From Mobula hypostoma (Eukaryota), in contig NC_086110.1 of assembly GCF_963921235.1 (NCBI RefSeq), forward strand, positions 13,764,001 through 13,828,000: a stretch of DNA of 64,000 bases, in the 5' to 3' direction. The translations under genes were made by a program, and so were the position numbers. Positions 22,546 to 63,864 of this stretch are shown here, piece by piece (position 1 is the stretch's first letter; every line of letters begins with the position of its first letter). The notes beneath the pieces were generated by a model, which was not told the DNA's origin, ran no database searches, and worked only from the letters and a program-made list of their open reading frames with translations.

Positions 22546-22916
22546 ATAGTACTAATGTTAGAGAAGTTGAGGTTTTAAATGTGATTGCAATCAAATTGAT
22601 TGCCTAAAATTGTAACTCCTGACAGCTAACTAAAATCGCCAATTTACATCACAACGCTAAAATCTACATCATCGCCCCGAACTTCGACTTCTATCCAAAT
22701 ACCTCCCTCTGCATTATTAGTTTTTTTTTTCATTTAGCGCTTTTTTTTAACTTGTTGGAAATTTTGCTATGAAATACGCTACACACAAGTTCATATGGAC
22801 TGTAAATAATGTAGAAGGAGTTCGTGGGAAAAATGCATTTCACATTTTGTTTTGTGTTTGTACAGTTGTCCAGGTTCATTCAGTGCAGATCTTCCTTTCA
22901 ATGTTTCCAGTCTAAT

Positions 22917-23210
22917 CTTGTTAGATAATACAGATGAGTCTGGCAGGAACGTTCACGATTCGTGAGATATCCAGTGAAAACAACTTTTCCCTGACAGGCT
23001 GTGCATCTCCAATGTGCTAGAAGCCTCATAAACTCCTTCTCATAAAAGTTCCGTTTATTACGGCTTTTATCCTGGTTAGAATTTCTGTATTATTTTGTAT
23101 CCAAAAGATTTCTGATTTATTTGGGTAAAAGGCTACCGTTTTATATTTGAGTTTCCGGGAATTTGGTGAGGTCCCTTTATCACGAATGATTTTCAGCGGA
23201 GTTTGAGGAA
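22917..23210 (-). pseudogene. Decayed C1-set exon of SIRP-like paralog B
   Basis: Aligns by eye along its length with 63331-63627 (ccgctgaaaatcattcgtg; gaggcttctagcac; tatctcacgaa). First Cys TGT is TAT, second Cys codon is deleted, there are frameshifts and stops, and the donor is caag|attaga instead of caag|gtaaga. Confidence 0.9.
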
Positions 23211-24659: not shown

Positions 24660-27600
24660 AGTAGCCCTTTATGTCTCCTTGCAACCGGCCATTTTTTCCA
24701 CTCCTCTGCCCTTTCAGAGGTTCATTTTGTAATGAAGCAAAATGAATGGCAGTGACTGGAGTTGAGGAGCAAAGGTTCACACAGTGTTCCATATCTGCCA
24801 GATAGAACTCGGTGTTCCCAGTTGAGTTTCCCTGAAAGAAGTATCCGAAGATTGTATTGAGGTCAATTCAGGTAATTTGGAATTTGAGAAGACCTACGGA
24901 TTGGTCCAAGATCGTTTCCGTTGGACACGAGTGAAGCCTGAATTTAAAAAGTACCTTATGTCGTGCATCCAATATATTCGGAGGAAGAAGCTGCCGACTA
25001 GAGTGTCTATCAGACGCTGCCACTATCCCATTTACAAAGAACAGAACGACTTAATTTAGGGTGTATGTAATCCTTCCATAGAGCTTAATTCCAGTAACAC
25101 TGCGAATGTCTTGGTCATCACCGACTAATACACCAGATATGGCTCAAACATTCTCCACTAAGGATCAGAGCATATCCATAGTTGCCAAAGTGTATAGGAT
25201 AAATTATTATTCATTATGGATGCACAGTGACCAGGGAAGGGATTTTAAGAGTCGGACCATATATGAGTTACTCAGTATGCTTCGAGTTATGAAGTCAAAG
25301 ACTACGCATGTCACCCCCAAGGTGATCCTCAGCCTGAAATATTCAACAGAACATTGCTAGACATGCTTGGGACTCTGGATGCCAGCAGAAAGAGAAAGTG
25401 GAGCCAACTAATTAGATATTTGATACACTGCTACAACTGGACACAAAATGAAAAAAAAAACTGGCTACTCCCCATACTATTCGATATTCGGGCAAGAAAC
25501 GAGGTTACCTATAGACATTTGCTCTGGAACCTCCGGGTTGGGGGGGTGGGGAAGAACTTTCTCCAGAACATGTATCTCAAGTATGTGTCTAACGTGAGGA
25601 AAGAAATGTAAAAATCACGTGAGCTAGCAGCAGTTTTGGTTAGCAAGCAAAAGCGCGGAAACCAGAAGAGATACGGTCAAGGATTCATGTTCTGTCAGTT
25701 GGTGCCTCGAGAAAGAGTTCTAATCATAAACTTGGTACTACAGCGGAAGCATATGTTTGCCAACCACTCGGTTTCTATGTCTTGCGTGTCAGGGTCCGGT
25801 CCGTCGATCCGTATTCCAGGTTTTCCGGTATTCCCTTGTCCTGTTGTGTTTCCAGTTTTCCCTTAATTGAGGCACATGATTCTCATTTTGGTCTGGCTAC
25901 ATAAATAGCTCCTGGGTTCAGCTTCATTTCCTGGACTGTTCCCTTCCGTTCCCTTCACTTTCCTCTTCCTCCTGAAGCCTTGACTGCAACCTTCGTCTGA
26001 AGCCTTTTCTTGCAATCATGCCTGCAAACTTTGCCTGAAGCCTTGCAAGCGTCCTCGCCTGTATCGCTTTCAAGTTCTACCGCCGGAGCTAGACCGGAGT
26101 TTTATTGTGTCTACATAAGGAATTGTCCATCGTTGTTTGGAACTGTCTCTGTATCCACGCCTTCAATAGGTAGGTCCGGCCGCTTGCCGCTACCTTGTGT
26201 TGAGAACCGTCTCTGTGTGCACGCCTTCGCTAGGTAGGTCCGGCCGTTTGCCGCTACCTTGTGTTGGGAACCTTCTTGTCGTGTTCAGCATTCTGTGTAT
26301 GAGCGCTAGGTGCTGTTCCCAAGGAGTGGTCCCAGCTCTGTCTTCTGTGTATGAGTCCAGGCCCTACGTCCTGTTCCCAAGGAGATGCCCTGGCTCATGT
26401 TCCATGTTCCTGTCTCTCAATTTCAAGGCTCCATGTTCCCATGCTCTAGACCAAGGCTGCGAGCTTCTAGTCCTCGTCCAAGGCTACGAGCGCCCAGTCC
26501 TCGTCCTAGGCTCTCGGGTTCCTGTCTCCCAAGACCACGGTTCTGTGCTTCCTGTTCTTCCAAACCCAAGTCAGGGCTTCGGGGTGTCGTCCTGTCCTTG
26601 TGCCTCGCCCAGCCCAGGAGTACCTCGCCCTGTCCAGGAAAGCCTCTAAGAATCCAAGTCTCGTCCAGTCCTGTAGCCACATCATGCCTTCGCCTAGTTC
26701 TGGAGTCCGAGCCCGAGTTAGGACCCAGGTTTTGCGTCCTTGTCCTGTCTCTGGCTCGGAGTCCATACCCAAGCCTCGAAGAACCCAAGCCTCGTCATGT
26801 CCTCGCCTAGTTCCGAGGTCCGAGCCGATTCAAGACCCAGGTCCTGGGTCCTTGTCAAGTCTCTGGCTCGGAGTCCAAGCCCAGGCTCCAGGTTCCAAAG
26901 TCCTTGTCCTGGTCCCACTTTCCTAGCCAAAGTCCTAGCCCAAGTCTATGTTTTTGTCCCAGCTCCTAGTCTGTGTCCTGTCATGTCCCTAACTCTAGTC
27001 CTAGTCCTGTTATGACGGAATAGCCCAGTCATACATATATCCAGCGACACAGGCACTATCGTGTTACTGTCGCCATCCTGAGTTCTCTCCTGTCGCATGA
27101 CCCCCCGCCCCGCCCCGCCCGCCCGTGTCGTCCATAGTCTAAGGAAGCCTTTTCGGTAGCCAAGAGCCTCCCATTGAGGAGAGGTGGTACTGTCATGGCC
27201 CGGTCTTTGAAGTCCGTTTTCCGGTTCAAGGTCCAGTTCATCGATCCGTATGCAAGGTTTTCCGGTTTCCCTTGTCCTTTTGTGTGCCTTAATTGAGACA
27301 TATTATTCTCATTTTCGGATGGCTACGTAAATAGCTCCTGGGTTCCGCTTCACTTGCTGGACTTTTCCCTTCCCTTCCCTTCACTTTCCTCTTCCTCCTG
27401 AAGCCTTGCCTGAAGCCTTTGCCTGCAACTTTGCCTGAAGCCTTGCCCTCGTCATCGCCTGTATCACTGTCAAGTTCTACAGACGGAGTAAGACCGAAGC
27501 CTTGCTGTGTCTTGATAAGGAACTCTCTATCGTTGTTTGGAACTGTATGTTTGTGTCCTGGCCTTCGCTAGGTAGTTCCGACCGTTTGCTGCTACCTTGA

Positions 27601-29295
27601 GTTGGGAACCGTCTCTGTGTCCACGTCTACGCTAGGTAGGTCCGGCCATTTGCCACTACATTGTGTTGCGAACCGTCTCTTCCTGTTCAGCATTCTGTTT
27701 ATGAGTCCCGGCCCTATGGCCTGTTCCCAAGCAGGGTCCCGGCTCTGTGTTCTGCATATGAGTCCCGTCCCTACGTCCTGTTCCCAAGGAGGGGTCCCGG
27801 ATCTGTGTTCCATGTTCCTGTCTCTCAAGTCCAAGGCTCCGTGTTCCCGTGCTCTCGACCTTGGCTCCAAGCGTCCAGTCCTCGTTCAAGGCTCCGAGGT
27901 TCCTGTCTCCCAAGACAATGGCTCTTGTGTTTCCTGTTCTCCGAGGACCAAGTCAAGGTTTCGCGGTCCCGTCCTGTCCTTGTGCCTCGCCCAGTCCAGG
28001 ATACCTCGTCCTGCCCAGGAAAACCTCGAAGAATTCAAGTCTCATCCAGTCCTGTAGCCACGTCATGTCCTGGCCTTTTTCTGGAGTCTGAGCCCGAGTC
28101 AAGACTCAGGTTTTGGGTTCCTGTCCAGTCTCTAGCTCGGAGTTCATACCCAAGCCTCGAAGAACTCAAGCTTCGTTATCTCCTCGCCTAGTTCCGGGGT
28201 CCGAGCCGAGGGAAGACCCAGGTCCTCAGTCCTTGTCCAGTCTCTGGCTCCGTGTCCAAGACCAGGCTCCTCGTTCCAAGTTCCTTGTCTAAGTCGCGCT
28301 TTCCTAGCCAAAGTTCTAGCCCAAGTCTGTGTTCCTGTCCCAGCTCCTAGTCTCTGCCCTGTCATGTCCCTAAATCTAGTCCCAGTTCTGTTCCAAGGAC
28401 TTCGGTGTCTGAGTCTTGCATTTGGATCCGCTCCCAGCGCCCCCGTTATGACATTGCCTGGTGGAAAGCCAGATGTCAAATTTGCTAGATTTCCTGGTGA
28501 AGCCCTAACATGGCAATCGTCTTGTCAATATTCTTCATTAGAACCATCTTTTACTCCAAGGGCAGGAATTGCATGTTAGCCCAGAGTCTGAAATGGAGCC
28601 CACACCAAGTAGAAAACTCTGCGCAGAAGGAGAATAGAAATGCAACAAACTGACAATAGTGTGATTTCAGAGGAAATTCATTAGAATATTGTGATACTAA
28701 TAATAAATAAAGACGCTCGCAGAATCCGCCAGAAGGGGAGACCCTGCTGTAAGATGTGATTTGAGAAGACGAATAGGCACATGAAAGAAATGTAAATATT
28801 TCTCAGTTCGCCAGTTCGTTTATAACCATCTTCCGGGGAAGTCCAGACTGTGGCTGCGGACATGGGTTCATCACCGAGTACTTAAAGTGAAGCACTCGAC
28901 TATCCAAAAAATGAGCTGGACGTTCATGTGCACACTTTGACTGGTTTAACTGTAATGGGCCCTTTACCTTTATTATTCTATTAACTTTTTTTTTAAGTTG
29001 AAATACCTGTAAATATGCTTCCGCTTTAATTTTATGCCGGTATAAGTTCTGTCAATTCCTGGTGAAAGATAAATGTGCGTGGGGCAGTAATGATACAGCA
29101 TTCACCGCAATTTTCGTTCCAATAGAACAATCCACCTTTCCATTTTAGTTGACCTCGGATTATACCGACTCTCGACATGTGTTGCTTATTGACTGTGGCC
29201 TTCGCACAGTTACTCATGCAAAACTGGGTCACGTGGTTGTTAGCCAGGGTCACTAACAAGCCTCGCTTGTTACGAGCATCAGTGAGAGCGTAACA
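24660..29295 (+). mobile_element. Degenerate Gypsy LTR retrotransposon (integrase region and 3' end), interrupted at 25787-28453
   Basis: EKTYGLVQDRFRW..SCIQ (H2C2 region), HSDQGRDF and HPQGDPQPEIFNRTLLDMLGTL. The frame continues across the insertion as SMSCVVESQM. Ends gtaaca at 29295. Outer limits approximate. Confidence 0.85.
25787..28453 (+). mobile_element. Non-autonomous LTR element: LTR (25787-27017), 173-bp internal region, LTR (27191-28453)
   Basis: TGTCA...TGACA termini, TSD TTGCG/TTGCC, two diverged direct repeats of about 1.25 kb each with an ataaata TATA-like box, and purine-rich gaggagaggtgg-tac just before the second LTR. Confidence 0.85.
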
Positions 29296-29389
29296 CCGAA
29301 AGTAACCTTTCACAAAATTCCCGCAATCTCGCGTTAGTCAAATTGCAAAGAGAGGAAAACCTTCTGCTTCCAGGATCAAAGGCACTAAT

Positions 29390-29770
29390 TAATACAGCAG
29401 CCGAGAGCCACTTTTATTTCCGACAATTTGCTGCTGACTTTTCACTTGACAACAAAACACTCCAAAGACTGCGACACTAACATTCAGGAGGGTAAATGTA
29501 CCCTTGTTATTCTTTACATTGAACTACTGTTTTCTGCTAACTGATTCTATAAATGCCCCCTCCCGGGTAAATGTACCCTTGTTATTCTTTACATTGAACT
29601 ACTGTTTTCTGCTAACTGATTCTATAAATGCCCCCTCCCAAACGGAACTTCAGCAATATTCTGTAGAACTGGAAATTTGGAGAACATGGATGCAGTCCCA
29701 CCGATTGCGACGTTTAAGATCAGAGGGATTACTCCACTTTGACTGAAGTTGCTTTTACGGTTGACAAATC
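29390..29770 (-). pseudogene. Decayed VJ-type Ig V exon of paralog B
   Basis: Reads ..QSGVIPLILNVAIGGTASMF(S)KFP.. then, after a frameshift, VWEGAFIESVSRKQ*FNVKNNKGTFTLLNVSVAVFGVFCCQVKSQQQIVGNKSGSRLL. First Cys is TCC, the DxGxYxC motif has decayed to VFGVFCC, and a J-like GNxSGSRLL follows. Acceptor reads cacttat, and there is an internal 75-bp tandem duplication. 3' boundary approximate. Confidence 0.8.
29490..29639. repeat. Perfect 75-bp tandem duplication inside the V pseudo-exon
   Basis: 29490-29564 is identical to 29565-29639. Confidence 0.97.
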
Positions 29771-30184: not shown

Positions 30185-30665
30185 AGTCTACTTTCGGAAT
30201 GAGGTCACATTCAGTTTGGACGAGACATATCTTATGTTCCGCCAGGGTAACCTGCAACCTGATTACATGAACATCGATTTTTCGAACTTCCGGTAATGCT
30301 ACCTTTCTTCACCATTCCCGATTCTCACTTCCCTCTCTCGCCTTGTCTTCTTACCTGCCGATCACCTTCCTCGTCTGTTCTTCCCCTTTTTCTTTTTTTT
30401 TTCCATGGCCTTCCATCCTCTCCTACCAGATTACCCCATCTCCAGCCTTGTATCTCTTTCAATAATCAACTCCCCAGCACTTTAGCTCACCCCAGCTCCA
30501 GTGTTCACCTGTCACCTTGTGGCTCTTCCTCCGCTCCTCTCACCTTATTACTTGACTCCTCATATTTCCCCAATTCTGATGAAGGATGTCGGCACGAAAC
30601 GTCGATTGTGCTCTTTCTCTAGATGCTGCCTGGCCTGTTGAGTTCCTCCAGCATTTTGAGTGTGT
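30185..30665 (+). mobile_element. Penelope-like element 3' fragment
   Basis: End of the GIY-YIG ORF (gggtaacctgcaacctgattacatgaacatcgat) followed by the pyrimidine-rich tail shared with 39340-39750. Confidence 0.75.
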
Positions 30666-33696: not shown

Positions 33697-36607
33697 AACC
33701 ATAGAAACCATAGAAACTACAGCACAGAAACAGGCCTTTTGGCCCTTCTTGGCTGTGCTGAACCATTTTCTGCCTAGTCCCACTGACCTACACAGGGACC
33801 ATATCCCTCCATACACCTCCCATCCATGTATCTGTCCAATTTATTCTTAAATGTTAAAAAAGAACCCGCATTTACCATCTCATCTGGCAGCTCATTCCAT
33901 ACTCCCACCACTCTCTGTGTGAAGAAGCCCCCCACCCCTCAATGTTCCTTTTGAACTTTTCTCCCCTCACCCTTAACCCATATCCTCTGGTTTTTTTCTC
34001 CTCTTGCCTCAGTGGAAAAAGCCTGCTTGCATTCATTCTATCTATACCCATCATAATTTTATATACCTCTATCAAATCTCCCCTCATTCTTCTACGCTCC
34101 AGGGAATAAAGTCCTAATCTATTCAACCTTTCTCTGTAACTGAGTTTCTCAAGTCACGGCAACATCCTTGTAAACCTTCTCTGCACTCTTTCAACCTTAT
34201 TTATATCATTCCTGTAATTTGGTGACCAAAACTGAACACAATACTCCAGATTCGGCCTCAACAATGCCTTATACAACCTCATCATAACATTCCAGCTATT
34301 ATACTCAATACTTTGATTAATAAAGGCCAATGTACCAGAAGCTCTCTTTACGACCCTATCTACCTGTGACGACACTTTTAGGGAATTTTGTATCTGTATT
34401 CCCAGATCCCTCTGTTCCACTGCACTCCTTAGTGCCTTACCATTAACCCTGTATGTTCTACCTTGGTTTGTCCTTCCAACGTGCAATACCTCACACTTGT
34501 CTGTATTAAACTCATTCTGCCATTTTTCAGCCCATTTTCCCAGCTGGTCCAAATCCCTCTGCAGGCTCTGAAAACTTTCCTCACTGTGTACTACACCTCA
34601 AATCTTTGTATCATCAGCAAATTTGCTGATCCAGTTTACCACATTATCATCCAGATCATTGATATAGATGACAAACAACAATGGACCCAGCACTGATCCC
34701 TGTAGCACACCACTAATCACAGGCCTCCACTCAGAAGCAATTCTCTACCATCACTCTTTGGCTTCTTCCATTGAGCCAATGTCTAATCCAATATACCACC
34801 TCTCCATGTATACCTAGCGACTGAATTTTCCTAACTAACCTTCCATGCGGGACCTTGTCAAAGGCCTTACTGAAATCCATGTAGACAATATCCAGTGCCT
34901 TCCTTTCATCCACTTTCCTGGTAACCTCCTCGAAAAAGTCCAATAGACTAGTCAAACATGACCTACCACGCACAAAGCCATGTTGACTCTCCCTAAAAAG
35001 TCTGTCTATCCAAATGCTTGTAGATTCTGTCCCTTAGTACTCCCTCTAATAACTTACCTACTACCGACGTTAAACTCACCGGCCTATAATTTCCCGGATT
35101 ACTTCTCGATCCTTTTTTAAACAACGGAACAACATGAGCCACTCTCCAATTCTCCGGCACCTCACCTGTAGACAGCGTCATTTTAAATATTTCTGCCAGG
35201 GCCCCCGCAATTTCAACACTAGTCTCCTTCAAGGTCCGAGGGAACACTCTGACAGGTCCCGGGGATTTATCCACTTTAATTTTCATCAAGACAGCAAGCA
35301 CCTCCTCCTTTTCAATCTGTACAGTCCATGATCTCACTACTTGATTCCCTCAATTCCATAGACTTCATCCCAGTTTCCTTAGTAAATACGGACACAAAAA
35401 ACCTATTTAAGATCTCCTCCATTTCCTTTGGTTCTGCGCATAACTGACCACTCTGATCTTCAAGAGGACCAATTTTATTCCTTACAATTCTTTTGCTCTT
35501 AATATGCCTGTAAAAGCTCTTTGGATTATCCTTCACTTCGCCTGCCAAGGCAACCTCATGTCTTCGTTTAGCCCTCCTGATTACTTTCTTAAGTATTTTC
35601 TTGCACTTCTTATACTCCTCAAGCACCTGATTTACTCCCTGTTTCCTATACATTTTATACAACTCCCTCTTCTTCTTCATCAGAGTTGCAATAACCCTTG
35701 AGAACCAAGGTTCCTTATTCCTATTCAATTTGCCTTTAATCCTGACAGGAACATACAAACTCTGCACTCTCAAAATTTCCCCTTTGAAGGCTTCCCACCT
35801 ACCAATCACATCTTTGCCAGAGAACAAGCTGTCCCAATCCAAGCTTTTTAGATCCTTTCTCATTTTTTCAAATTTGGCCGCCTTCCGGTTCAGAACCTCA
35901 ACCCTAGGACCAGATCTATCCTTGTCCATGATCAAATTGAAACTAATGGTGTTATGATCACTGGAACCGAAGTGCTTCCCTACACAGACTTCCGTCACTT
36001 GTCCTAACTCGTTTCCTAACAGGAGATCCAATATTGCATCCCCTCTACTTGGTCCCTCTATATATTGATTTAGAAAACTTTCCTGAACACATTTTACAAA
36101 CTCTAAACCATCTAGACCCCTAACAGTATGGAAGTCCCAATCAATGTATGGAAAATTAAAATCCCCTAACACCACAATTTTATGTTTCCTGCAGTTGCCT
36201 GCTATCTCTCTGCAGATTTGCTCTTCCAAGTCTCGTTGACTATTGGGTGGTCTGTAATACAATCCCACTAATGTGGCCATATCTTTCCTGTTTCCCAGTT
36301 CCACCCATAAGGACTCAGTAGACAAGCTCTCTAATCTGTCCTCCCTGAGCACTGCTGTAATATTTTCCCTAACAAGCAATGCTACTCCCCCACCTTTCAT
36401 TCCTCTGCCTCGATTACATCTGAAACATCGGAACCCTGGAATATTAAGCTGACAGTCCTGCCCCTCCTGTAGCCAAGTTTCACTAATTGCTATAACGTCA
36501 TAATTCCAAGTGTCAATCCACACCCTCAACTCATTCGCCTTCCCCACAGTACTCCTGGCATTGAAATATATACACCTCAGAAGATTTTTACCACCACTTA
36601 CAACCTT
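33697..36607 (-). mobile_element. CR1 LINE with a near-complete ORF2, nested in opposite orientation
   Basis: 411-codon APE endonuclease ORF (35312-36547: ISETWL, VVLGDFNFP, LDLLL, SDHN) followed by frameshifted RT ORFs; (tttctatgg)n tail at 33697. Confidence 0.93.
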
Positions 36608-37777
36608 TCATAAGGGTAGTTATGGAAAGTAAGACGATTATAGAAGAGGAAGTACTGGCGCTTTTAAGGAATATAGAAGTGAATAAGTCTCCGGGTCCGG
36701 ACGAAATATTCCCTACGACCTTGAGGGAAGTTAGTGTGAAAATAGTAGGGTCTCTGACAGAAATATTTCAAATATCATTAGAAACAGGGATGGTGCCTGA
36801 GGATTGGCGTATTGCTTATGTGGTTCCATTGTTTAAAAAGGGTTCTAAGAGTAAACCTAGCAATTATCGGCCGCTGAGTTTGACATCAGTGGGGGGTAAA
36901 TTGATGGAAAGTATTCCTAAAGTTGGTATATATAATTATCTGGATAGACAGGGTCTGATTAGGAACAGTCAACATGGATTTGTGCGTGGAAGGTCATGTT
37001 TGACAAATCTTATTGATTTTTTTGATGAGGTTACCATGAAAGTTGACGAGGGTAAAGCGGTGAATGTTATCTATATGGACTTCAGTAAGGCCTTTGACAA
37101 GGTTCCACACGGAAGTTTAGTTAGGAAGAGTCAATCATTAGGCATTAATATCGAAGTAGTAAAATGGATTCAGCAGTGGCTGGATGGGAGACACCAGAGA
37201 GTAGTGGTGGATAACTGTGTGTCAGACTGGAGGACGGTGTGCAGTGGTGTGCCTCAGGGATCTGTACTGGGTCCGATGTTGTTTGTCATATATATTAATG
37301 ATCTGGATGATGGGGTGGAAAAATGGATTAGTAAGTATGCACATGATACTAAGATAGGTGAAGTTGTGGATAATGAAGTAGGTTTTCAATGCTTGCAGAG
37401 ATATTTATAACAGTTAGAAGAGTGGGCTGAAAGATGGCAGTTGGAGTTTAATACTGAAAAATGTGAGGTGCTACATTTTGGTAGGACTAATCAAAATAGA
37501 ACATACATGGTAAATTGTAGTGCATTGAAGAATGCTGTAGAACAGAGGGATCTAGGAATAATGGTGCATAGTTCCCTGAAGGAGGAATCTCATGTGGATA
37601 GGTTGGTAAAGAAAGCATTTGGTATGCAGGCTTCTATTAATCAGAACATTGAGTATAGGATTTGGGATGTAATGTTGAAATAGTATAAGGCATCGGTAAG
37701 GCCAAATTTGGAGTATTGTGTGCACTTCTGGTCACCGAATTACAGAAAAGATGTCAATAAAATTGAAAGAGTACAGA

Positions 37778-39750
37778 AACAACAGGAATTCTGCAGATGC
37801 TGGAAATTCAAGCAACATACATCAAAGTTGCTGGTGAACGCAGCAGGCCAGGCAGCATCTGTAGGAAGAGGTGCAGTCGACGTTTCAGGCCGAGACCCTT
37901 CGTCAGGACTAACCGAAGGAAGAGTGAGTAAGGGATTTGAAAGTTGGAGGGGGAGGGGGAGATCCAAAATGATAGGAGAAGACAGGAGGGGGAGGGATAG
38001 AGCCGAGAGCTGGACAGGTGATAGGCAAAAGGGGATACGAGAGGATCATGCGACAGGAGGCCCGGGAAGAAAGACAAGGGGGGGGGGTGACCCAGAGGAT
38101 GGGCAAGAGGTATATTCAGAGGGACAGAGGGAGAAAAAGGAGAGTGAGAGAAAGAATGTGTGCATAAAAGTGAGTAACAGATGGGGTACGAGGGGGAGGT
38201 GGGGCCTTAGTGGAAGTTAGAGAACTTGATGTAACGCAAACAACAGGAATTCTGCAGATGCTGGAAATTCAAGCAACATACATCAAAGTTGCTGGTGAAC
38301 GCTGATGACTGCATTGGCGCTGCTTCCTGCACGCATGCAGAACTCGTTGACTTTATTAACTTTGCCTCCAACTTTCACCCTGCCCTCAAGTTTACCTGGT
38401 CCATTTCTGACACCTCCTTCCCCTTTCTAGATCCTTCTGTCTCTGTCTCTGGAGGCAGCTTATCCACTGATGTCTACTATAAGCCTACTGACTCTCACAG
38501 CTATCTGGACTATTCCTCTTCTCACCCTGTCTCTTGCAAAAACGCCATCCCCTTCTCGCAATTCCTTCGTCTCTGCCGCATCTGCTCTCAGGATGAGGCT
38601 TTTCATTCTAGGACGAGGGAGATGTCTTCCTTTTTTAAAGAAAGGGGCTTCCATTCCTCCACTATCAACTCTGCTCTTAAACGCATCTCCCCCATTTCAT
38701 GTACATCTGCTCTCACTCCATCCTCCCACCACCCCACCAGGAATAGCGTTTCCCTGGTCCTCACCTACCACCCCACCAGCCTCCGGGTCCAACATATTAT
38801 TCTCCGTAACTTCCGCCACCTCCAATGGGATCCCACCACTAAGCACATCTTTCCCTCCCCGCCTCTCTCTGCATTCCACAGGGATCGCCCCCTACACAAC
38901 TCCCTTGTCCATTCGTCCCCCCCATCCCTCCCCACTGATCTCCCTCCTGGCACTTATCCATGTAAGCGGAACAAGTGCTACACATGCCCTTACACTTCCT
39001 CCCTTACCACCATTCAGGGCCCCAAACAGTCCTTCCAGATGAGGCATCACTTCACCTGTGAGTCGACTGGGGTGATATACTGCGTCCGGTGCTCCCGATG
39101 TGGCCTTTTATATATTGGTGAGACTCGACGCAGACTGGGAGACCACTTTGCTGAACATCTACGCTCTGTCCGCCAGAGAAAGCAGGATCTCCCAGTGGCC
39201 ACACATTTTAATTCCACATCCCATTCCCATTCTGACATGTCTATCCACGGCCTCCTCTACTGTAAAGATGAAGCCACACTCAGGTTGGAGGAAAAACATC
39301 TTATATTCCGTCTGGGTAGCCTCCAACCTGATGGCATGAACATCGACTTCTCTAACTTCCGCTAAGGCCCCACCTCCCCCTCGTACTCCATCTGTTACTC
39401 ATTTTTATGCACACATTCTTTCTCTCACTCTCCTTTTTCTCCCTCTGTTCCTCTGAATATACCTCTTGCCCATCCTCTGGGTCACCCCCCCCCCTTGTCT
39501 TTCTTCCCGGACCTCCTGTCCCATGATCCTCTCGTATCCCCTTTTGCCTATCACCTGTCCAGCTCTCGGCTCTATCCCTCCCCCTCCTGTCTTCTCCTAT
39601 CATTTTGGATCTCCCCCTCCCCCTCCAACTTTCAAATCCCTCACTCACTCTTTTTTCAGTTAGTCCTGACGAAGGGTCTCGGCCTGAAACGTCGACTGCA
39701 CCTCTTCCTACAGATGCTGCCAGGCCTGCTGCGTTCACCAGCAACTTTGA
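37778..39750 (+). mobile_element. Penelope-like element with GIY-YIG endonuclease and inverted terminal arms
   Basis: Open frame to 39365 with RT C-terminus (DD..FLD..TDVYYKPTDSHSYL) and GVIYCVRCSRCGLLYIGETRRRL. Arm 37778-38232 is the reverse complement of 39340-39750. TSD TGAAAGAGTACAGA. Confidence 0.93.
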
Positions 39751-41029: not shown

Positions 41030-42480
41030 AGCTTTAGCAACAAACAAAGTTTGCTGGTGAATGCAGCAGACCTGGCAGCATCTCTAGGAGGAGGTGCAGT
41101 CGACGTTTCAGGACGAGATTCTTCGTCAGGACTAACTGAAAAAAGAGCTAGTAAGGGATTTGAAAGTGGGAGGGAGAGGGGGAGATCCGAAATGACAGGA
41201 GAAGAGAGTAAGGGGAGGGTTGGAGCCAAGAGCTGGACAGTTGATTGGCAAAAGGGATAGGAGAGCATCATGAGATGGGAGGCCTAGGGAGAAAGAAAAG
41301 GAGAGGGGGAAGCCCAGAGGATGGGGAAGGAGTATAGTGAGAGGGACAGAGAGACGACACCGGTGCCAAGCTGTATCGGCCCGAGTGCCCTTCCCTTTGA
41401 CATCGGTGGGGTGGATAGCGGTACTTGCAGCATAGGCACTGCCGGTCTTCCACACAACCTTGTCCATGGCCTGCGCCCTGGAAAACTTCTAAGGCGCAAA
41501 TCCATTGTCTGATGAGACTAACGGATGTCTATTTATCTATTTATAGTGACATGGACAGAGGGAGAAAAAGGAGAAAGAAAAAAGAATATAATAAATAACG
41601 GACGTAGTACGAGGGGGAGGTGGGGCATTAACAGAAGTTAGAGAAGTCAATGTTCATGCCATCAGTTTGGAGGCTACCAGACGGAATTGTTCCTCCAACC
41701 TGAGTGTGGCTTCATCGTTACAGTAGAGGAGGCCGTGGATAGACATATCAGAATGGGAATGGGCCGAGGAATTAAAATGTGTGGACACTGGGAGATATTG
41801 ATTTCTCTGGCAGACAGGGCGTAGGTATTCAGCGAAACGCTCTCCCAGCATGCGTCGGGTGTCGCCAAGATATAGAAGGCCGCATCGAGAGCACCGGACG
41901 CAGTATATCACCCTAGCCGACTCACGGGTGAAGTGTCGCCTCACCTGGAAGGACTGTCTGGGGCCCTGAATGGTAGTGAGGGAGGAAGTGGAAAAGCCTG
42001 TGTAGCAGTTGTTCCGCTTACAGGGATAAGTGCCGAGAGGGAAATCGGTGGGGGGATCGAATAGTCAAGGGAGTCGCGTAGGGAGCGATCCTGCGGAAAG
42101 CCGAGAGACGGGAGAGGGAAAGATGTGCTTAGTGGTGGGATCCCGTTGGAGGTGGCAAAAGTTACGGAGAATTATTTGTTGGACCCGAAGGCTGGTGGGG
42201 TGGCAGGTGAGGACAAAGGGAACCGATTCCTAGTGGGATGGCGGGACGATGGGGTAGGAGCAGATGTGTGTGAAATGGGAGAGATGCGGTTGAGAACAGA
42301 GTTGATGGTGGAGGAAGGGCAGCCTCTTTCTTTAAAAATGGAGGACAGCTCCTTCGTCCTGGAATGAAAAGCCTCATCCTGAGAGCAGATGCGGCGGAGA
42401 CGGTGGAATTGCGAGAAGGGGATGGCATTTTTGCAAGAACAGGGTGAGAAGAGGCACAGTCCAGATAGCTGTGAGAGTAG
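41030..42480 (-). mobile_element. Second, older Penelope-like element
   Basis: RVIYCVRCSRCGLLYLGDTRR in ORF 41654-41944 and the same tail family. Interrupted by a SINE fragment at about 41355-41550. Confidence 0.85.
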
Positions 42481-52409: not shown

Positions 52410-53180
52410 AGATTTTACAGAGTTGCTGGAAATCTAGAACAACACACACGAAGTTGCAGAGGAGCTTAGTAGGTGAAGAAACATCTATAGAAATGAATAA
52501 ACAGTCGATGTTTCGGGCCAAGACCCTTCATCGGCATTGGAAAGGAAGAGGGAAGATGCTAGAATACAAAGGTGGGGGAGTGAATGGAGGACTAATAAGA
52601 AGGTCATGGGTGAAGCCTGGTGAGTGGGGAGGAGGCGATGAAGTAAGAATCTGGGAGGTGATAGATGGAAAAAAAAAGTACTGTAGAAGACGGAATCTGA
52701 TAGAATAGGAAAGTAGACCATGGAAGAAAGGGAAGGAGGAAGGGCATCAATGGGAGGATATAGGCAAGTGAGAAGAAGAAGTGGGAGGCCAGAATGTAGA
52801 ACAGAAGAAGAGGGAAGGGAGAGAGAAAAATTAATGAAAGCAGAAATCAATGTTCATGCCATCAGGCTGGAGGCTACCGGAGTGAAAATGAGGCGTTGAT
52901 CCTACACCCTAAGAGAGGCTTTATAGTGTCATAAAAAGAAGCTGAAGACCAAAGCGTCGCGATGAGAATGGAGAAAGGAAGTAAAATGACTGGCCACCGG
53001 AATTTCTGCTTTTTTTTTTTGGATGCAGTGGAGGTGCTTGCAAAAGCGGTCCTTTAATTTATTTTGGGTTGCACCAACGGAGTGGAGGCGGCATCGAAAG
53101 CACCGGAGAGAGTAGACAACCATAATAGATTTGAAGATAAAAATTTTCCCTCACCAGGACAGACTGTTTAGGGCCCTGAC
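52410..53180 (-). mobile_element. Degenerate Penelope-like 3' fragment
   Basis: atgttcatgccatcaggctggaggctacc and PVASHF..FLHSHRD, homologous to 39200-39750. Confidence 0.7.
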
Positions 53181-56310: not shown

Positions 56311-57856
56311 TTTATTGGTTTCCCTGTGGGTTGGAGCACAATTCAGTGAATATTTACGAGATGTCAATCACTTATTTGCTGTTTTCCTCTTCTATTACAA
56401 TCGAGTGACTGAATTATTTGGCCTGAAATAATAAGAAGCTGCTCGACGAATTCAATATGCTAATACAATGTGTGTGAAGACAAGAGAATGGTCAACGTTC
56501 TCCGATCGCAACTCGGGATTAGAGGGTAGAGGTAAGATACTCAATATAATAACCGTAAGAAGGAGGTGCGCGACCGAAGCTGTCAGGTAATAGGTGGAAC
56601 CAAACTGTGGGCTGGAGTAGTGGAGTGGTTGCAAGCGGAGCGAGAATAGTTTTTTTTTATATAATTGGCGGATTCTACCTGAAATTACACAAACTTTGTC
56701 TCGCCAAATGGCGACGACTCTCTGGATGTCGTTTTTTTTACCGTCTGAGGAACGTTGAGGTAAAATCATTGGGATGTATTTAGTAGAAGTTGTTCCTTTT
56801 TCTTGAAATGATTGGGGACCAGAAGAGGAGATTGTGACTGATGATATCAGCCATTCTCACGTTGAATGGCCGGTCGCGCAGAAGAGAGAGACGGAATGGT
56901 GGAGTCTGCCTTATTCCCGATCCTATCCTTCAGTTCCCTACTTCTATTTTTTTTTTCAGTGGCAATTGGCTCCAATGAATCAGAAAAAATGTCGAAGTCT
57001 CTTTGATGTGTTTACTGTATATCTGCGTTCAAAGAATGTTTGTGTTGAAGTTTGCATGCTGGTGTGCTCATTGAACTGTGAAGCTGCAGAGCTGCGCAAG
57101 TCAGTTTGTCGGCAAAATTGCTTTACTCTGTGAAAATAATTCAAAATCTAGCATTCAGTGACTAATTGAATCAAACGATTGCAAAATATATTAGTGATGT
57201 ACTCATCAGTTATCAATTTTAGATTGCTACCGCTATACACAAGGTTTATGTCAATGTTCGTTCAAGATCTCCCTTTTTAATTTACATGGAATTTCAACGG
57301 CAAAAGCTTGTCTTGTCCCACAGAAGAATGAACGTTTTTTTTTCCTTACTTAGAATGAATTTTAGCAAAATCTAATTGGGAGAGTAGAGAAAACGTTGTA
57401 GAGATAGCTATGTTACTAAATGCTTGTCTAACTCACAATGCAAGCTCATTTTCGTGTTATTTCTGTCTGATTTCCGCGGCCTGATTTATCTACTGAGCTC
57501 ACAGGTGGTTGCTTCACTACAGTAAAAGTTTAACTTGAACTGGACCTTATTGCGAAAGGACATTACGAAATTGTGATGATATATCGCCAACGATATAATT
57601 GTTCTGCAAGCTGACGTATATGAACTAGAGCAGATTTTTCATTCTCTTTAAACTGACATTGCTGTTCTTCTTTTGTAATTGAAAACATGTTTATTGATTG
57701 GTTCAGAGAGAAATTTCGCCCATTTGTCACAATGTCCACTTCTCTTATTCTTAACTTTCAGTATTATTTCAGCCGTCGTTATTTAGTCTCCCTACAGAAG
57801 ATAAAGGGAAACAATCAGTTGGGAATGCATTCGTTCACAGTCCACAGAACCGAAGC

Positions 57857-58003
57857 CTATTTCGATTTTGAGCTTCTCGCTTCCTGTGAAAGCTTCACAT
57901 CTGCGTACACTGAATGTTTGCTGCCGTGCTTAAATGCCGATATTTCTTTGTTTGGAACCTGCAGGGCGGCATATGTCAACTTTTCATCACTGCCACGTCG
58001 AGT
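57857..58003 (-). CDS. Terminal cytoplasmic exon of gene A with ITIM and ITIM/ITSM-like motifs
   Basis: Acceptor tgaattatttccacag, phase 0. Reads TRRGSDEKLTYAALQVPNKEISAFKHGSKHSVYADVKLSQEARSSKSK* (TAG at 57857-57859). LTYAAL and SVYADV fit the (I/V/L/S)xYxx(L/V) consensus. Confidence 0.88.
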   Translation of the reverse strand, partial: TRRGSDEKLTYAALQVPNKEISAFKHGSKHSVYADVKLSQEARSSKSK

Positions 58004-59322
58004 CTGTGGAAATAATTCAATATCCAGTCTTTGTCAATTGTCCAGCAAAAAAGCGTAGCGATCGATTTTAAGATACAATTGTAATGTATTTAAACATTTT
58101 CATTTTCGGAATACTGCCATTTTACTGAAAGGGAGAAAACAGAAACCGCTGTTTCTTTGTTCTTCACTGCCATTTTGCCATGTTTTACATTATTGTATAA
58201 GGTATTATTTTACGAGATCCCCAGCTATGGGTAAGTACCTACACTGCTTTGGGGGCAGCCTCGAGGGAGTCGAAAGCTACGGGAGTAAACCTGGGCAGCA
58301 AATCCGGAGTGCAGCCCCGAATGTGGCTGGAAGTTATTGAGCATCCGTCCGGAAGCTCCTGCAGCCAAACTGTTGCCAAGCGTGCTGCTTCATAAGCTTT
58401 TCTTTGGAGGACACTGGTGAGGCCAAGAGGGAGATTCTGAAGAATGGAAATCTTAGGATCGCCATACCTTCTGTCATGGCTTGTGATGATATTCATCAAC
58501 AGCCATCAGGGCCATTGTCCTTCGAGACAAAGAGATGACCACCACCAACCACCATAAAGTCAACATTAGACCCTTCTGTTTTTATAGTTTAAAACTAGAT
58601 AGTTTAAGACTATAGTTTTATATTTTAATATTCTTTCCAAAAACAATGTTTCTTTTGTATCTCCCCGCCCCCAATCCCTTGGCTTTACCTTGGCATAGAC
58701 AACATGTTCGTCCTGGCGTCTAACCTGGTGATTTTTTTTTGTTTTCTCTCAGGTTTAGTGTAGCATAGGCAAGGTTATGTTCAACTGGCGCTATTCCGGT
58801 CTGTTACAAAGAGGTGGTTAACATTGTTAGTGGCAAGTCTAATGCAGTTCCAATTCCATTAAGAAAAATGAGTATGAAAGCGTAAACTTAAATAAGTTAA
58901 ATGCGAAATAATAACATTCCAGGATCAGTAAATGATATTGCGAGGTTTGTTGTTTCAGAAACGGTACGAAATGTGTTTTCCCTAGTGCTGAACTTCTCTA
59001 TGATCTTTCAAGATTGAAATTAATTTTCAAGCACCATTTTCAGTCTATTCTACGAGTAGGATGAGTTTCTCATCTATCGTCATCTTTTTCCTTCCGCATT
59101 TATTTCCCTTTTCCTCCTTTCCCTAACAGTTTACGCAGGGACAACTGTCACCTTTGTATTCTTCAGGCCCTACGGAGTATTGAAGCAGCGTTGTGCGGGT
59201 CAGTGGCTGTCTTGGGTTCTCATACACTGACAGACATGTCCATTCTGTGATCGTAACTTATCATAATATTCCTCTATCAAAATATCCCTCTCAGAAGCAA
59301 AAAGAAAAGCTGTATCACCTAC

Positions 59323-59366
59323 CGGTTCTCCGCACGGACTTGCTTCCTCAGAGGTTCTTTGAATAC
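59323..59366 (-). CDS. Short cytoplasmic exon of gene A
   Basis: Acceptor ttttgattccattag and donor ccg|gtaggt; 44 nt, phase 1-0. Reads (G)IQRTSEEASPCGEP and exactly bridges the phases of the TM exon and the terminal exon. Confidence 0.75.
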
Positions 59367-59412
59367 CTAATGGAATCAAAAGTACAACACTTTAAATAAT
59401 AGCTGTAGTGTT

Positions 59413-59724
59413 CGGGCACGTGGCTAAGTGGTTAAGGCGTTCGACTAGCGATCTGAAGGTCGTCAGTTCGAGCCCCAGCCGAGTCAGTGTGTTGTGTCCT
59501 TGAGCAAGGCACTTAATCACACAGTGCTCTGCGACGACACTGGTGCCAAGCTATATGGGTCCTAATGGCCTTCCCTTGGACAGCATCGGTGTCGTGGAGA
59601 GGGGAGACTTGCAGCATGGGCAACTGTCGGTCTTCCGTACAACCTTGCCCAGGCCTGCGCCCTGGAGAGTGAAGACTTTCCAGGCGCAGATCCATGATCT
59701 CGCAAGACTATCGGATGCCTTTAT
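59413..59724 (+). mobile_element. tRNA-derived SINE with a CORE-like central motif, in an intron of gene A
   Basis: A box TGGCTAAGTGG, B box AGTTCGAGCC, central gtgtccttgagcaaggcacttaa; TSD TAGTGTT (59406-59412 and 59725-59731). Confidence 0.85.
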
Positions 59725-60142
59725 TAGTGTTATAAAAGTTGAAGTTGTGCGTTGGATTGCAATCAAATTTCTTGCCTAAAGGTGCAACTCCTGACAGCTA
59801 TTCAAAATACTATGGTGCACACTGTGGCCATGAAATGTGTTGTGCATGACCTTTCATGAATGTGGTGGATATAGATTTTGATTGAAAGAGTAGAGTGGCG
59901 GTACTTGTGTAAAATCGCCGCACGAAGTCAGACTGAAAACCCCAAGCGTCTGAGAAACATAGGTACAGGGAATGATTGGATAACTTGAATGGGAATGTAA
60001 AAGTATTTTGTAATTTATAATAAGTATTGTCGAATGTGACTCGGATAATGCCTTGGAAATCTTGATTCTCTCATTAACATTTCTGTTTTCAATCTGTAGA
60101 GGTAATAAATGGAAATGCTTGCCAAATCATTCATGTTCTTAC

Positions 60143-60250
60143 CACGTTTTGCCTTTACTCCGATTCTTATCAAAATTATAATCAGAATTACAATTGCCAG
60201 TCCGCCCAACGCACCTCCGAGAATCAGGGGCTTATTGATGTTGTCTAGAT
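60143..60250 (-). CDS. Transmembrane exon of SIRP-like receptor gene A
   Basis: Acceptor tttcttcttttattaccag and donor cgtg|gtaaga; 108 nt, phase 1-1. Reads (D)LDNINKPLILGGALGGLAIVILIIILIRIGVKAKR: uncharged hydrophobic helix, GxxxG motif, basic stop-transfer residues. Confidence 0.9.
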
Positions 60251-61759
60251 CTGGTAATAAAAGAAGAAACTGTGAAACATACATAAATATATAGAGACCG
60301 TGAGACAAGGAAGTAGAACATTCTAATTGGTAATTCAGGCCTGAACAAATAAAGATTGCAAGAGGCACAATATGACACGAGTTTTAAGGTAATGATAGGA
60401 CTTATGGAGCGAACAGATCATCTTACATCATGGTTCTTTACAGCGCAACACACAAAAAAATGTTACAGGAATTCAGCAGGCAAGGCAGCATCTGTAAAGA
60501 AAAGTGGGCAACTTTTCGGTCGAGAACCTTTGGCAGGACTGGTGCTGCCTGGCCTGTTGAGATCCTCCAGCATTTAGTGTGGGTTGCTTGGAGTTACAGC
60601 ATCTACAGATATTCTCTCGTTTGAGTTTTGGTTCTTCACAGTGAGTACTTTTTATTTGGGTTAAGATATTTTTTTCTTATAAAGATGCCTTTGCAGATAG
60701 TTTGATCGCAGATTTGAACTTACATCGTTTCTATTTCTGAACTGTCACTCGAAAATTTTCTCAATAGATTCCATTGAAAAAACAAGAGAAAATGACATTT
60801 TACTTTCATAAAACATCACAAGATGCATTAATAGAATATTAAAAAGCACAATCCGAAAGATATATGAGGAGAAGAGTCTAGGTAATTGGTGAAAATTGGA
60901 GAGAAAAACGAAAAGGTTTAGAGTAAGTAATAAGACAAATACACTGGCAGAGAGATTTCCAGCTTTATGTGCGGAGGTAGCCAAAGGCGTAGAAATGCGC
61001 ACATAGTTAAAAAAAAATAACAGAATACGGAACAATAGACGAATTTATATATTATTTATAAATATTTGAAACATAAATATGATTTGACTATTTATAAACG
61101 TGACTAACTTCCAAATTAGTGCTCGATCCTGTCTCACTTTCCTGCACGGTTCAGATGCTTCGTTTCTCAACTGGTATGAAATATAAATATATGAGTCTCG
61201 GATATTTCCAATGAATACACATGCACAATATTAGAAAGGTAGAAATTACAAAGATTTACCAACTTCTCAATGAGGAAACCTCTCAGTACTGACTCTTATC
61301 AGGACAAGGAATCTACCTCCGGCTGAAGGAAATTGTCAATTCATATCCTCTACCGGAATCTTATCTACGTATTAGATCGTACTCTCAACTCACAGAGCCT
61401 TTTGAATAACCTTACATAAAATTGTTTGTTTTTTTTATTGTCACGGTGATATTACCGTACAGAAGGTAACATTCACATCCTTCCTGATCTTCTTATTACA
61501 TATTCTATTTCTCGCTTGAGATTTTATTTGGTGCAAGCATACTTTATGTTCTTTACACAAAATCTATCAAAGTAAAACATATTTTTCAAATCCTTTCACC
61601 CAAAGAACACCGCTTTATATAATTACAAAAAACTTTACTATCCGTTTTAACATTTTAAACTACTTTATTTTCATAAGCTATCTTCCTTTCCTTATTGTTC
61701 TCTTAGTGATTCTTTGTTGTTTTTTTTAAGTTTTCCCAATCTTCCAGATTCCCACTACT

Positions 61760-63165
61760 CGTGGTGACTTTGTACGTATGAGCTTTCAGTTTGATATCTT
61801 TTTTTATTTCCTTAGTTATCCGACGCTGGCTCTCCCCACCTGTACTCTCCTTGCTTTTAACTGGAATATACTGCTATTGAGCATCGTGAACAAACTCCTT
61901 GAAGTATTCTACTCTTCTTCAAACGTCCCACCAAGTAGCCTGTGCTCCCAGTCTACCCTAGCCAGCTCTTCCCTCATCGTTTTGTATTCTCCCTTGATCA
62001 GGCATAAGGCACTGTTTTTAGTTCGAAATATTGTGCCCTCCATTTGTAGAAGTAAAACAGTCTTTCTAAGAGGATCCCTCACTACAAGATTGGTCATTTT
62101 ACTTCTCTCATTCCGCAGGGCCATATCCAAGATTACATTTTCCTTTGTAGGTTCAGTAGCATGCTGTTGAAGAAAGCTATCACGTATAGATTCTTTGAAG
62201 TCCTCCTCAAGACTGCCTCGACCAACTTGATTGACGTAATCTATGTGCAAGTTAAAGTCCACGATACCTGCTGTTCCATACTTAATGCTTCAGTTATTTC
62301 TCGGTTTAATGCCTGTGCCACTGTAATGTTATTATTCGGTGGCATAAAGACAACTCCCACCATGGATTTTCCCCTTTACTATTCCTAATCTCTACTCAGA
62401 TGGAATCAACATTCCGAACCTCAGATCTTATATCATCTCTCACTATCGTCCTGACCTCATCCTTATTTAAGAGCACTTCCCCGCCTCCCTTACCTTCCTG
62501 CCTATCCTTCCGTATTACCTGATATCCTTGGATATTTATTTTTCAATCCTCTCCATTCTGAAACCAAGTTTCTGTATGGGCCACTAAATCATACGCCTTT
62601 ATACTGATTTGTGCCACAAGTTCACAGACCTTGCTACAGATACTGTGGATATTGAGGCAAACTGTCCTTAAAAGTGCCTTTAAAGTTTTGTGACCTTTGT
62701 CTCTTATGTACTTGACTTTTCTGCATTCCACCCTTAACTTTCACTTTTTTGTAACCTTTGCTTTTCTTTATCTTGATCCACACTTTTCTCTTTTACTTTA
62801 TCCATATTCCTCCAATCTGCTCCAATTTCCCCATGCTACTTGGTTTAAAAGCCCTATCCACAAACCTAGTTATGCGATTCACCAGGATCCAGGTTCCATC
62901 ACGGTTCAGGTGGAGCCTGTCCCAAAGGAACAGCTCACTCCTTCCCCAGTACTGGTGCCGGTTCCCCAGGATTCCCACACCTAATGTTGAGCTAAGCATT
63001 TAACTCTCTAATCTTATTAACCCTGTGCCGATTTGCGCTTGGCTCAGGTAGTAATCCAGAAATTACCACTTTTTGGTTCTGCTTTTTAAGTTAGTCCCTA
63101 GCATGCTCAAATTCCCTCTGTAGGACCTCTTTCCTCTTTCTACCTTTGTCGTTGACACCCACATT
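61760..63165 (-). mobile_element. Degenerate CR1 fragment (endonuclease region) in the C1-TM intron of gene A
   Basis: CLNIHSI..YDLVA.TETW, MDFNLHID and LFLWDRLHLN motifs. Confidence 0.8.
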
Positions 63166-63330
63166 TCCTTGCAGGTATAAGGCTGTAAATAATGTAAAAA
63201 CCGCACACACGTTAACTTTTCCCTTTTAAAAAAAAGAAATAGATTTCACATTTTCTTTCTTGTGTTTATATAGCTTTCTAGGCATATTCTCATTCAAGTT
63301 GGAGCTTGCTTTAAATGCTTCCAGTCTTAC

Positions 63331-63627
63331 CTTGTTCGATAATATAGCTGAAACTGGTAGGAATTTTGAGCGTTTCGTGAGATACCAGACAGGTGTAAAC
63401 CACTTTACCCTGAGCAGGCTGCACATCTTCCAAAGTACTGGAAGCCTCATACAATCCTTCTGAAGTCTCAGTTATTGACGGTTCCATTTTGGGTAGAATT
63501 TCCATATTATTTCTGCGCCAAAAGATGTCTAATTTCTTCGGATAAAATGCTGCAGTTTTACACATGAGCTTCCGGGTTTTCGGTGAAGTTTCTTCAACAC
63601 GAATGATTTTCAGCGGAGTTGGGGGAG
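63331..63627 (-). CDS. Ig C1-set domain exon of a SIRP-like receptor (gene A)
   Basis: Acceptor ttttattccgttgtag and donor caag|gtaaga; 297 nt, phase 1-1, open. Reads PPTPLKIIRVEETSPKTRKLMCKTAAFYPKKLDIFWRRNN...YTCLVSHETLKIPTSFSYIIEQ, with C1-set hallmarks C-x4-FYP-x6-W and YxCxVxHxxL. Confidence 0.92.
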
Positions 63628-63864
63628 CTACAACGGAATAAAACGCGACGTAGATTTTTTAGCTATTATCTGATCGTATACGTTCTCCGTCTCATGCTAC
63701 CACTCTCTATTGTTATCATTGCTGTAGTTTGAAATCGCCTGAATTTGTCATTTATTAATTGTTTCAGGGGGCGGATAAACATGACAAACCAGGTGTGTCG
63801 GTGACAGATGGGGAACGCACGCCTGTTTGGAATAAACGTAGCAGATTTAGTGGGTGTTAGGATT

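Follow-up and report, generated by a model that had tools for sequence, protein, structure and literature searches.

Immune receptor gene of a chondrichthyan multigene family in Mobula hypostoma, with a frameshift in its cytoplasmic tail

Exons, splice joints and the public model of the gene

The region from 57857 to 63627 was analysed within a stretch of 64,000 nucleotides (nt) of the Mobula hypostoma genome (contig NC_086110.1, positions 13,764,001 to 13,828,000; the whole stretch is referred to as the window). All features of the gene in this region are on the minus strand. To identify the gene, the exon coding for a C1-set immunoglobulin (Ig) domain (63331-63627, 297 nt, phase 1-1) was used as the query in an exhaustive protein search, and it was 100% identical to residues 223-320 of P0001. 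This protein is XP_062923620.1 of M. hypostoma, located on an 80.6-Mb chromosome and named 'natural cytotoxicity triggering receptor 3 ligand 1-like' in RefSeq. The region comprises the C1, transmembrane (TM) and cytoplasmic exons, that is, the 3' half, of XP_062923620.1, a genuine surface immune receptor gene. The exon chain is not due to chance, because the C1 exon is 100% identical to a RefSeq protein and three predicted splice sites were used in spliced contigs.

The initial annotation had proposed four exons with phases 1-1, 1-1, 1-0 and 0-stop, coding for a C1-set domain, an uncharged TM helix with GxxxG and a tail with two tyrosine motifs, and each of these elements was found at the coordinates proposed. 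AG precedes all four exons (C1, TM, 3 and 4), GT follows the first three, and the spliced frame consists of 197 codons and a stop. The C1 exon matched Pfam PF07654 with 37.4 bits (cut-off 21) and an E-value of 3.3e-9, and the signature FYP...W...YTCLVSH was present as FYPKKLDIFW and YTCLVSH. Among solved structures, it matched the CL/CH constant domains of Ig, the alpha-3 domain of MR1, UrIg2 and SIRP-gamma. The next exon (60143-60250, 108 nt, phase 1-1), identical to P0001 residues 321-357, encodes a connecting peptide, a predicted TM helix (GGALGG) and a KAKRG stop-transfer sequence; the TM segment, PLILGGALGGLAIVILIIILI, has zero charged residues and includes the GxxxG motif. This is followed by the short cytoplasmic exon 3 (59323-59366, 44 nt, phase 1-0; IQRTSEEASPCGEP), also present in the paralogues. 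Exon 4 (57857-58003, 147 nt, phase 0-stop), which in the family is the final coding exon of the tail, contains LTYAAL (57962-57979) and SVYADV (57896-57913), with their tyrosines 22 residues apart, and the stop codon at 57857-57859. It aligns with KLTYAALQ...HTLYADV of the paralogues. An AATAAA sequence read directly at 57690-57695, approximately 165 nt past the stop, is a candidate polyadenylation signal.

To examine the splice joints, contigs of four sequencing runs (X1-X4) were aligned to positions 57750-63700 of the window, those of X1 being 95-98% alike. One 364-nt X1 contig held the joints 63331/60250, 60143/59366 and 59323/58800, all of the GT..AG type on the minus strand, and joined exon 3 on both sides. 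A second X1 contig stopped exactly at 63627 and continued for 65 nt off the stretch, presumably into the V (variable) exon, and an X1 contig also spanned 57815-58005. Of the joints predicted initially, 63331/60250, 60143/59366 and the acceptor at 63627 were therefore observed. The predicted joint 59323/58003 was not seen in the X1 contigs; instead, the sole joint leaving exon 3 led to 58800. The contigs of runs X2-X4, which are from M. hypostoma itself, matched repeats only and no exons in the aligned region.

The joint at 58800 marks a fifth coding exon, designated exon 3b (58689-58800), which the initial annotation had missed, so that its chain of four real exons was incomplete. Exon 3b has an AG acceptor and an AAG/GTAAAG donor, and reads TGIAPVEHNLAYATLNL..., with LAYATL at 58756-58773 and ...DEHVVYAK in another frame. 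The RefSeq orthologue of the manta Mobula birostris, P0158 (94% identical), reads ...GEP/TGIAPFEHNLAYATLNVRENKKDHQVRRQDEHVVYAK/TRRG..., continuing TRRGSDEKLTYAALQFPNKEVSAFKHGS, which corresponds to exons 3, 3b and 4, and exon 3b is likewise conserved in the alignment of family members (A1). When the X1 differences were applied to the window, the tail of P0158 was reproduced letter for letter, and X1 was therefore taken to be manta-like RNA. The RNA status of X1 was guessed, but joints of the GT..AG type within its contigs point to processed transcripts. The tail is coded by three exons (3, 3b and 4), not two. LAYATL, together with LTYAAL and SVYADV of exon 4, fits the immunoreceptor tyrosine-based inhibitory motif (ITIM) consensus (S/I/V/L)xYxx(I/V/L), and all three follow an uncharged TM segment. 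These motif sequences support a tail of the inhibitory (ITIM) type.

The upstream part of the protein was read from P0001, in which both a leader, MSVDANVWRLALLAAFWPAAKA, and a V domain are present. The V domain ends in YYCQVKSQQQIFGNGSGSQLIVL, a germline-joined motif resembling a J (joining) segment, and continues straight into PPTPLK of the C1 exon. From this protein sequence, the leader and a germline-joined VJ-type V exon are placed just past the window edge. No disabling lesion, of the kind that the initial annotation had considered for the leader and V exons, was present in either, as read from the P0001 protein sequence. The AlphaFold model consists of V, C1 and a TM helix, with a mean predicted local distance difference test (pLDDT) score of 79.7 and both Ig domains confident.

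The gene had been described as hidden, which applies to the ITIM exons only, as XP_062923620.1 already models the V, C1 and TM exons. In this model the ITIM exons are swapped for an exon 55 kb downstream, at window positions 5206-5289 (minus strand), which reads GSLPLHVSPPYYYCHHVDAGLRGRHRSR and lies beyond a dead paralogue of the gene. The N-terminus of the model (...SLQPDGMNIDFS) resembles the ends of Penelope-like elements, and matching ends recur in the window at 39237-39353, 30198-30284, 52837-52878 and 41640-41678. At neither end is the RefSeq model good, as its N-terminus seems transposon-derived and its distant last exon bypasses the ITIM exons. For annotation, the correct order of the tail is exon 3, 3b and 4.

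The frameshift in exon 3b and its probable consequence

Exon 3b is 112 nt long in the window compared with 111 nt in X1, in which position 58734 is omitted and 58733 carries a T>C change. The difference in length falls in an A9 homopolymer at 58732-58740, which is longer by one base than the in-frame run of the sister species and causes the frameshift. With A9, exon 3b reads TGIAPVEHNLAYATLNLRENKKKSPG followed by TAG at 58720-58722, leaving the second motif, DEHVVYAK, in another frame. When exon 3b is included, the frame ends after LAYATLNLRENKKKSPG, and LTYAAL and SVYADV then lie in the 3' untranslated region. The gene had initially been called intact, which is put in question by a +1 frameshift after which, if exon 3b is included, the protein ends beyond its first ITIM.

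Premature stops within 50-55 nt of the last exon junction usually escape nonsense-mediated decay. The TAG is 31 nt upstream of the 3' end of exon 3b, and because the stop is this close to the last exon junction the mRNA should escape such decay.

To check the homopolymer, 11 words sampled from 58680-58810 were searched for in further M. hypostoma runs. Logan contigs of the DNA runs X5-X8 contained 10-11 of the 11 words, and the RNA-like run X9 contained eight. For spliced RNA, the numbers expected were estimated at approximately 8.9 of 11 with A9 and 6.4 of 11 with A8, so that the X9 count leans, weakly, to A9.

The manta copy was also found to be truncated, at a different position. A T>A change at 57919 creates a stop just before SVYADV, the fourth tyrosine motif, and P0158 ends in ...KHGS. 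By sequence, the two Mobula sister species carry different, independent truncations of the same tail.

Taken together, the region 57857-63627 contains exons of a real gene of a chondrichthyan multigene family, the main product of which probably has approximately 296 amino acids (aa) and one membrane-proximal ITIM, its tail being cut by the exon 3b frameshift. This product would most likely read V-C1-TM-...LAYATLNLRENKKKSPG, with LAYATL as its single ITIM, and would signal weakly or need dimerisation. Several points weigh against such a product. The contigs with splice joints belong to the sister species, not to this genome, and X1 is only guessed to be RNA. Both the inclusion of exon 3b and the presence of A9 in M. 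hypostoma RNA rest on the X9 word counts, which are indirect, and the DNA runs with A9 words derive from the likely source sample of the assembly. The signalling role of all family members would be by analogy. One ITIM per chain would be a weak recruiter of phosphatases with tandem SH2 domains unless the receptor dimerises. Furthermore, the manta orthologue has also lost its fourth tyrosine through a nonsense change, so the gene lineage could be decaying rather than tuned.

This last point leads to the possibility that the gene is becoming a pseudogene, a remnant that is still transcribed, within a birth-and-death cluster, but no longer has a selected function. In keeping with this, the tail is truncated by independent lesions in the two Mobula species, a dead paralogue lies 34 kb downstream, and the last exon has a decayed copy. 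Of the approximately 10 interspecies substitutions in the C1 exon, 7 alter the protein sequence. The two Mobula species differ by 2.5-3.2% in intronic pieces, and the substitution rate of the C1 exon, which is about the intronic one, is near neutral. However, other orthologue pairs of the family are equally divergent (91-96% identity), and fast change is therefore a trait of the family, not a sign of death. In each Mobula species, the frames of the leader, V, C1 and TM are open, and so is this lineage in Hypanus sabinus (P0003). In manta, the gene is expressed and its transcript spliced, and at least one canonical ITIM is kept in every reading. Pseudogenisation was judged unlikely on this evidence, but given two independent tail truncations and a dead neighbour it stays a live rival.

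Similarly low odds were assigned to the skipping of exon 3b in M. hypostoma, which would yield a main product of approximately 318 aa with the distal motifs LTYAAL and SVYADV. Because exon 3b is flanked by phase-0 junctions, skipping it leaves exon 4 in frame, and exon 4 is open in this genome with both motifs intact, which would be needless if it were merely 3' untranslated region. At approximately 3% divergence of the two Mobula species, however, chance could have kept exon 4 open. In the window, exon 3b has intact splice sites, the sole joint observed from exon 3 enters it, the orthologue and paralogue models contain it, and 8 of its 11 words are present in the RNA-like run of the same species. 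With exon 3b included in the main product, the distal pair LTYAAL/SVYADV would be used only when the exon is skipped.

Least probable of the three, and doubtful, is that the extra A comes from an error in the assembly or from a rare allele and that the true tail is the full SIRP-alpha-like one with the four tyrosines of LAYATL, VVYAKT, LTYAAL and SVYADV: homopolymer length is the commonest type of assembly error, deleting one A restores the conserved frame exactly, the rest of the gene is intact, and a real heterozygous or individual-specific allele is compatible with DNA runs from the likely source sample, but the contigs of all four DNA runs contain 10-11 of 11 words across the A-run, with 8 of 11 in the RNA-like run.

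Surroundings of the gene in the window

The dead paralogue was recognised from two exons on the minus strand. Its C1 exon (22915-23208) is 40% identical, has in-frame stops and has lost both cysteines, and its V exon (29368-29726) contains stops and an internal tandem duplication at approximately 29500-29680. A GC-rich repeat block lies between the V and C1 exons of this paralogue, at approximately 26000-28500. Nearer to the gene, a decayed tandem copy of exon 4 is located at approximately 56995-57135 (minus strand), some 720 nt past the stop. Its Tyr codons are now Cys and Asn (LTCAAL ... SLNADI), and its acceptor region, TTGAATTATTT(C/T)CACAG, is recognisable, conserved as TTGAATTATTTTCACAG.

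In the intron after the TM exon (60015-60142, minus strand), read-through of the TM donor gives GKNMNDLASISIYYLYRLKTEMLMRESRFPRHYPSHIRQYLL. The RefSeq models P0163 (a paralogue) and P0003 (H. sabinus) end in the same read-through peptide, at approximately 75% identity. This peptide may represent a conserved intron-retention isoform without ITIMs, or slow intron divergence.

Two intronic repeats, at 59342-59739 and 60536-60734, showed contig depths of 10^4 to 10^5 in all four runs X1-X4 and are probably abundant, transcribed elements resembling short interspersed nuclear elements. The repeat at 59342-59739 has a tRNA-like end, but ARAGORN called no tRNA gene in this high-copy repeat.

Besides the dead paralogue, positions 1-57000 of the window consist almost wholly of decayed retroelements. 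These include reverse-transcriptase open reading frames (ORFs) at 19746-21134 (plus strand), 35312-36547 (minus strand) and 36622-37410 (plus strand), and a Penelope-like ORF at 38289-39365 (plus strand). A run of 128 N, either an assembly gap or a masked run, was present near 6100.

The chondrichthyan family compared with known receptors

In the family to which the gene belongs, a leader is followed by a V domain that includes a J-like motif (FGNGSGSQLIVL), a single C1-set domain, a TM helix free of charged residues and a tail. V and a single C1 precede the TM segment in all 19 of the 19 family members aligned in A1 and also in P0001. The usual tail has four tyrosines in two pairs, as seen within A1 in P0016, P0154, P0169 and P0152 (P0017 is an isoform of the P0152 gene). 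In members with the full tail, the exon 3b unit is xxYAxLN...(I/V)Y(S/P)QT and the exon 4 unit is KLTYAALQ...(L/V)YA(D/E)V. Based on these sequences, the ancestral tail would have had two tyrosine pairs, xxYAxLN...xxYxxx and KLTYAALQ...xxYADV, each spaced approximately 22-24 residues.

The identity of the gene decreased from 94% with the M. birostris orthologue to 75-83% with P0159 and P0003 and 47-59% with other rays. In RefSeq, at least eight family proteins map to the same M. hypostoma chromosome. The initial annotation had placed the gene in a SIRP-like family of cartilaginous fish, possibly lineage-specific and uncharacterised, and within the reach of the searches these last two points were supported. 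The family profile gave 45 matches at E<=1e-8, every one of them chondrichthyan and none weaker than 5e-31, and no bony-vertebrate relative was found at this threshold in the search, which sees only proteins sharing short words with the query. The relatives belong to the genera Mobula, Hypanus, Hemitrygon, Narcine, Pristis, Leucoraja, Heterodontus, Heptranchias, Hemiscyllium, Chiloscyllium, Stegostoma, Scyliorhinus, Mustelus, Carcharodon and Callorhinchus. To the extent of these searches, this supports a family confined to cartilaginous fish (sharks, rays and chimaeras). No paper on this chondrichthyan family was found in a literature search.

The automatic names of its members are inconsistent, ranging over PTPNS1-like, SIRP-beta-like, NCR3LG1-like, Ig lambda-like, tapasin-related, TCR-beta-like, PD-L1-like, CD276 and MHC class II-like. 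Such scatter is as expected where a curated family is lacking. The gene is a real, ordinary member of this family, for which machine annotation exists but no study was found, and its tail is eroded. Receptors of the V-C1 type in which the V domain is J-like are of interest as non-rearranging relatives of antigen receptors, and in this family such an ectodomain is joined to a tail like that of SIRP-alpha. The M. hypostoma copy offers a concrete case of how such families vary signalling strength.

Fold searches gave similar matches, 1e-14 to 1e-16, to several V-C1 families (light chains, B7-H6, butyrophilins, tapasin-related protein and SIRP-alpha). The fold, as modelled, would identify 'V + C1' only and cannot decide the family. 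The RefSeq name of the gene refers to NCR3LG1 (B7-H6), which shares a V plus C1-like ectodomain and was the top Swiss-Prot fold match (8.7e-15). This match was inseparable from those to butyrophilins, tapasin-related protein and SIRP-alpha (all approximately 1e-14), and the name is automatic and differs among paralogues.

Among solved structures, the best match to the family profile was UrIg2 (9dmx), with 6e-30 summed over three C domains and 48 bits for V-C1. UrIg and UrIg2 of elasmobranchs likewise have a non-rearranging VJ exon followed by C1-type domains, and membership of this group was considered for the family since 9dmx tops the profile matches. UrIg2 of the nurse shark has a VJ domain plus nine C1-type domains; the paper describing it contains no mention of an ITIM (0 occurrences) (PMC12227049). 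Expression of both UrIg and UrIg2 is strongest in the liver, with UrIg2 also expressed in the gill (PMC12227049). In contrast, the present family has a single C1 domain and an ITIM tail, which ruled out membership.

In architecture, PRARP (putative remnants of an antigen receptor precursor) would share the overall layout of the family. As reportedly described by Fu et al. 2019 (J Immunol), PRARP has a non-rearranging VJ exon, a single C1, a TM segment and an ITIM tail, and is said to occur in bony fish, amphibians, reptiles and birds.

The nearest named look-alike by language-model features was SIRP-alpha (PTPNS1/SHPS-1/CD172a), and of the SIRP-like character assigned to the gene initially, the likeness of the tail was supported at the level of sequence and that of the ectodomain was not. 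In SIRP-alpha, too, the V domain is N-terminal and J-like at its end, a C1-set domain follows, the TM segment has no charge and the tail has two tyrosine pairs. SIRP-alpha clusters were the nearest named ones to the paralogue P0016 by protein language-model features (Atlas; 0.97 and 0.96), and many paralogues carry the RefSeq name 'PTPNS1-like'. In the search of the family profile against solved structures, SIRP-alpha (2wng) ranked third (7e-24), compared with 6e-30 for UrIg2, in which three C domains are summed, approximately 1e-19 to 1e-23 for Ig light chains and 1e-19 for SIRP-gamma. However, the SIRP ectodomain consists of one V-set and two C1-set domains (PMC12975943), whereas the family has V and one C1. 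Identity to V-C1 proteins in structure-based alignments was approximately 14-25%.

To compare the tails, the SHP-2-binding peptide of SIRP-alpha, DITYADLNLPKGKKPAPQAAEPNNHTEYASIQTS, was used as printed in PMC5589908. From ITYADL to TEYAS, it aligned with the tyrosine pairs of the family across both tyrosines with one one-residue gap, giving z values of 3.1-9.5 against shuffled tails. When the tail by itself was used in a protein search, all matches were family members from rays, and SIRP was not among them. Common descent would account for the tail match, but so would convergence on a geometry needed by tandem SH2 domains. In the window copy, the frame breaks after the first tyrosine of this SIRP-alpha-type two-pair tail.

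The ITIMs of SIRP-alpha recruit SHP-1/SHP-2 (PMC12975943). By analogy, Src-family kinases would phosphorylate the tail tyrosines of the family, and SHP-1/SHP-2 would bind the phosphorylated pairs through their tandem SH2 domains, damping cell activation.

As a more tentative proposal, for which we consider the chances small, the family could be the cartilaginous-fish representative of the ancestral stock of SIRP and/or PRARP. A non-rearranging VJ domain with a single C1 would then already have been combined with the SIRP-alpha-type double-pair tail, and the number of ITIMs would have been tuned copy by copy through frameshift, nonsense change and exon duplication. If so, the locus would show three tuning states together, namely the frameshifted exon 3b, the decayed extra exon 4 and the dead paralogue, and the SHP-recruiting module shared with SIRP-alpha would predate the split between cartilaginous and bony vertebrates.

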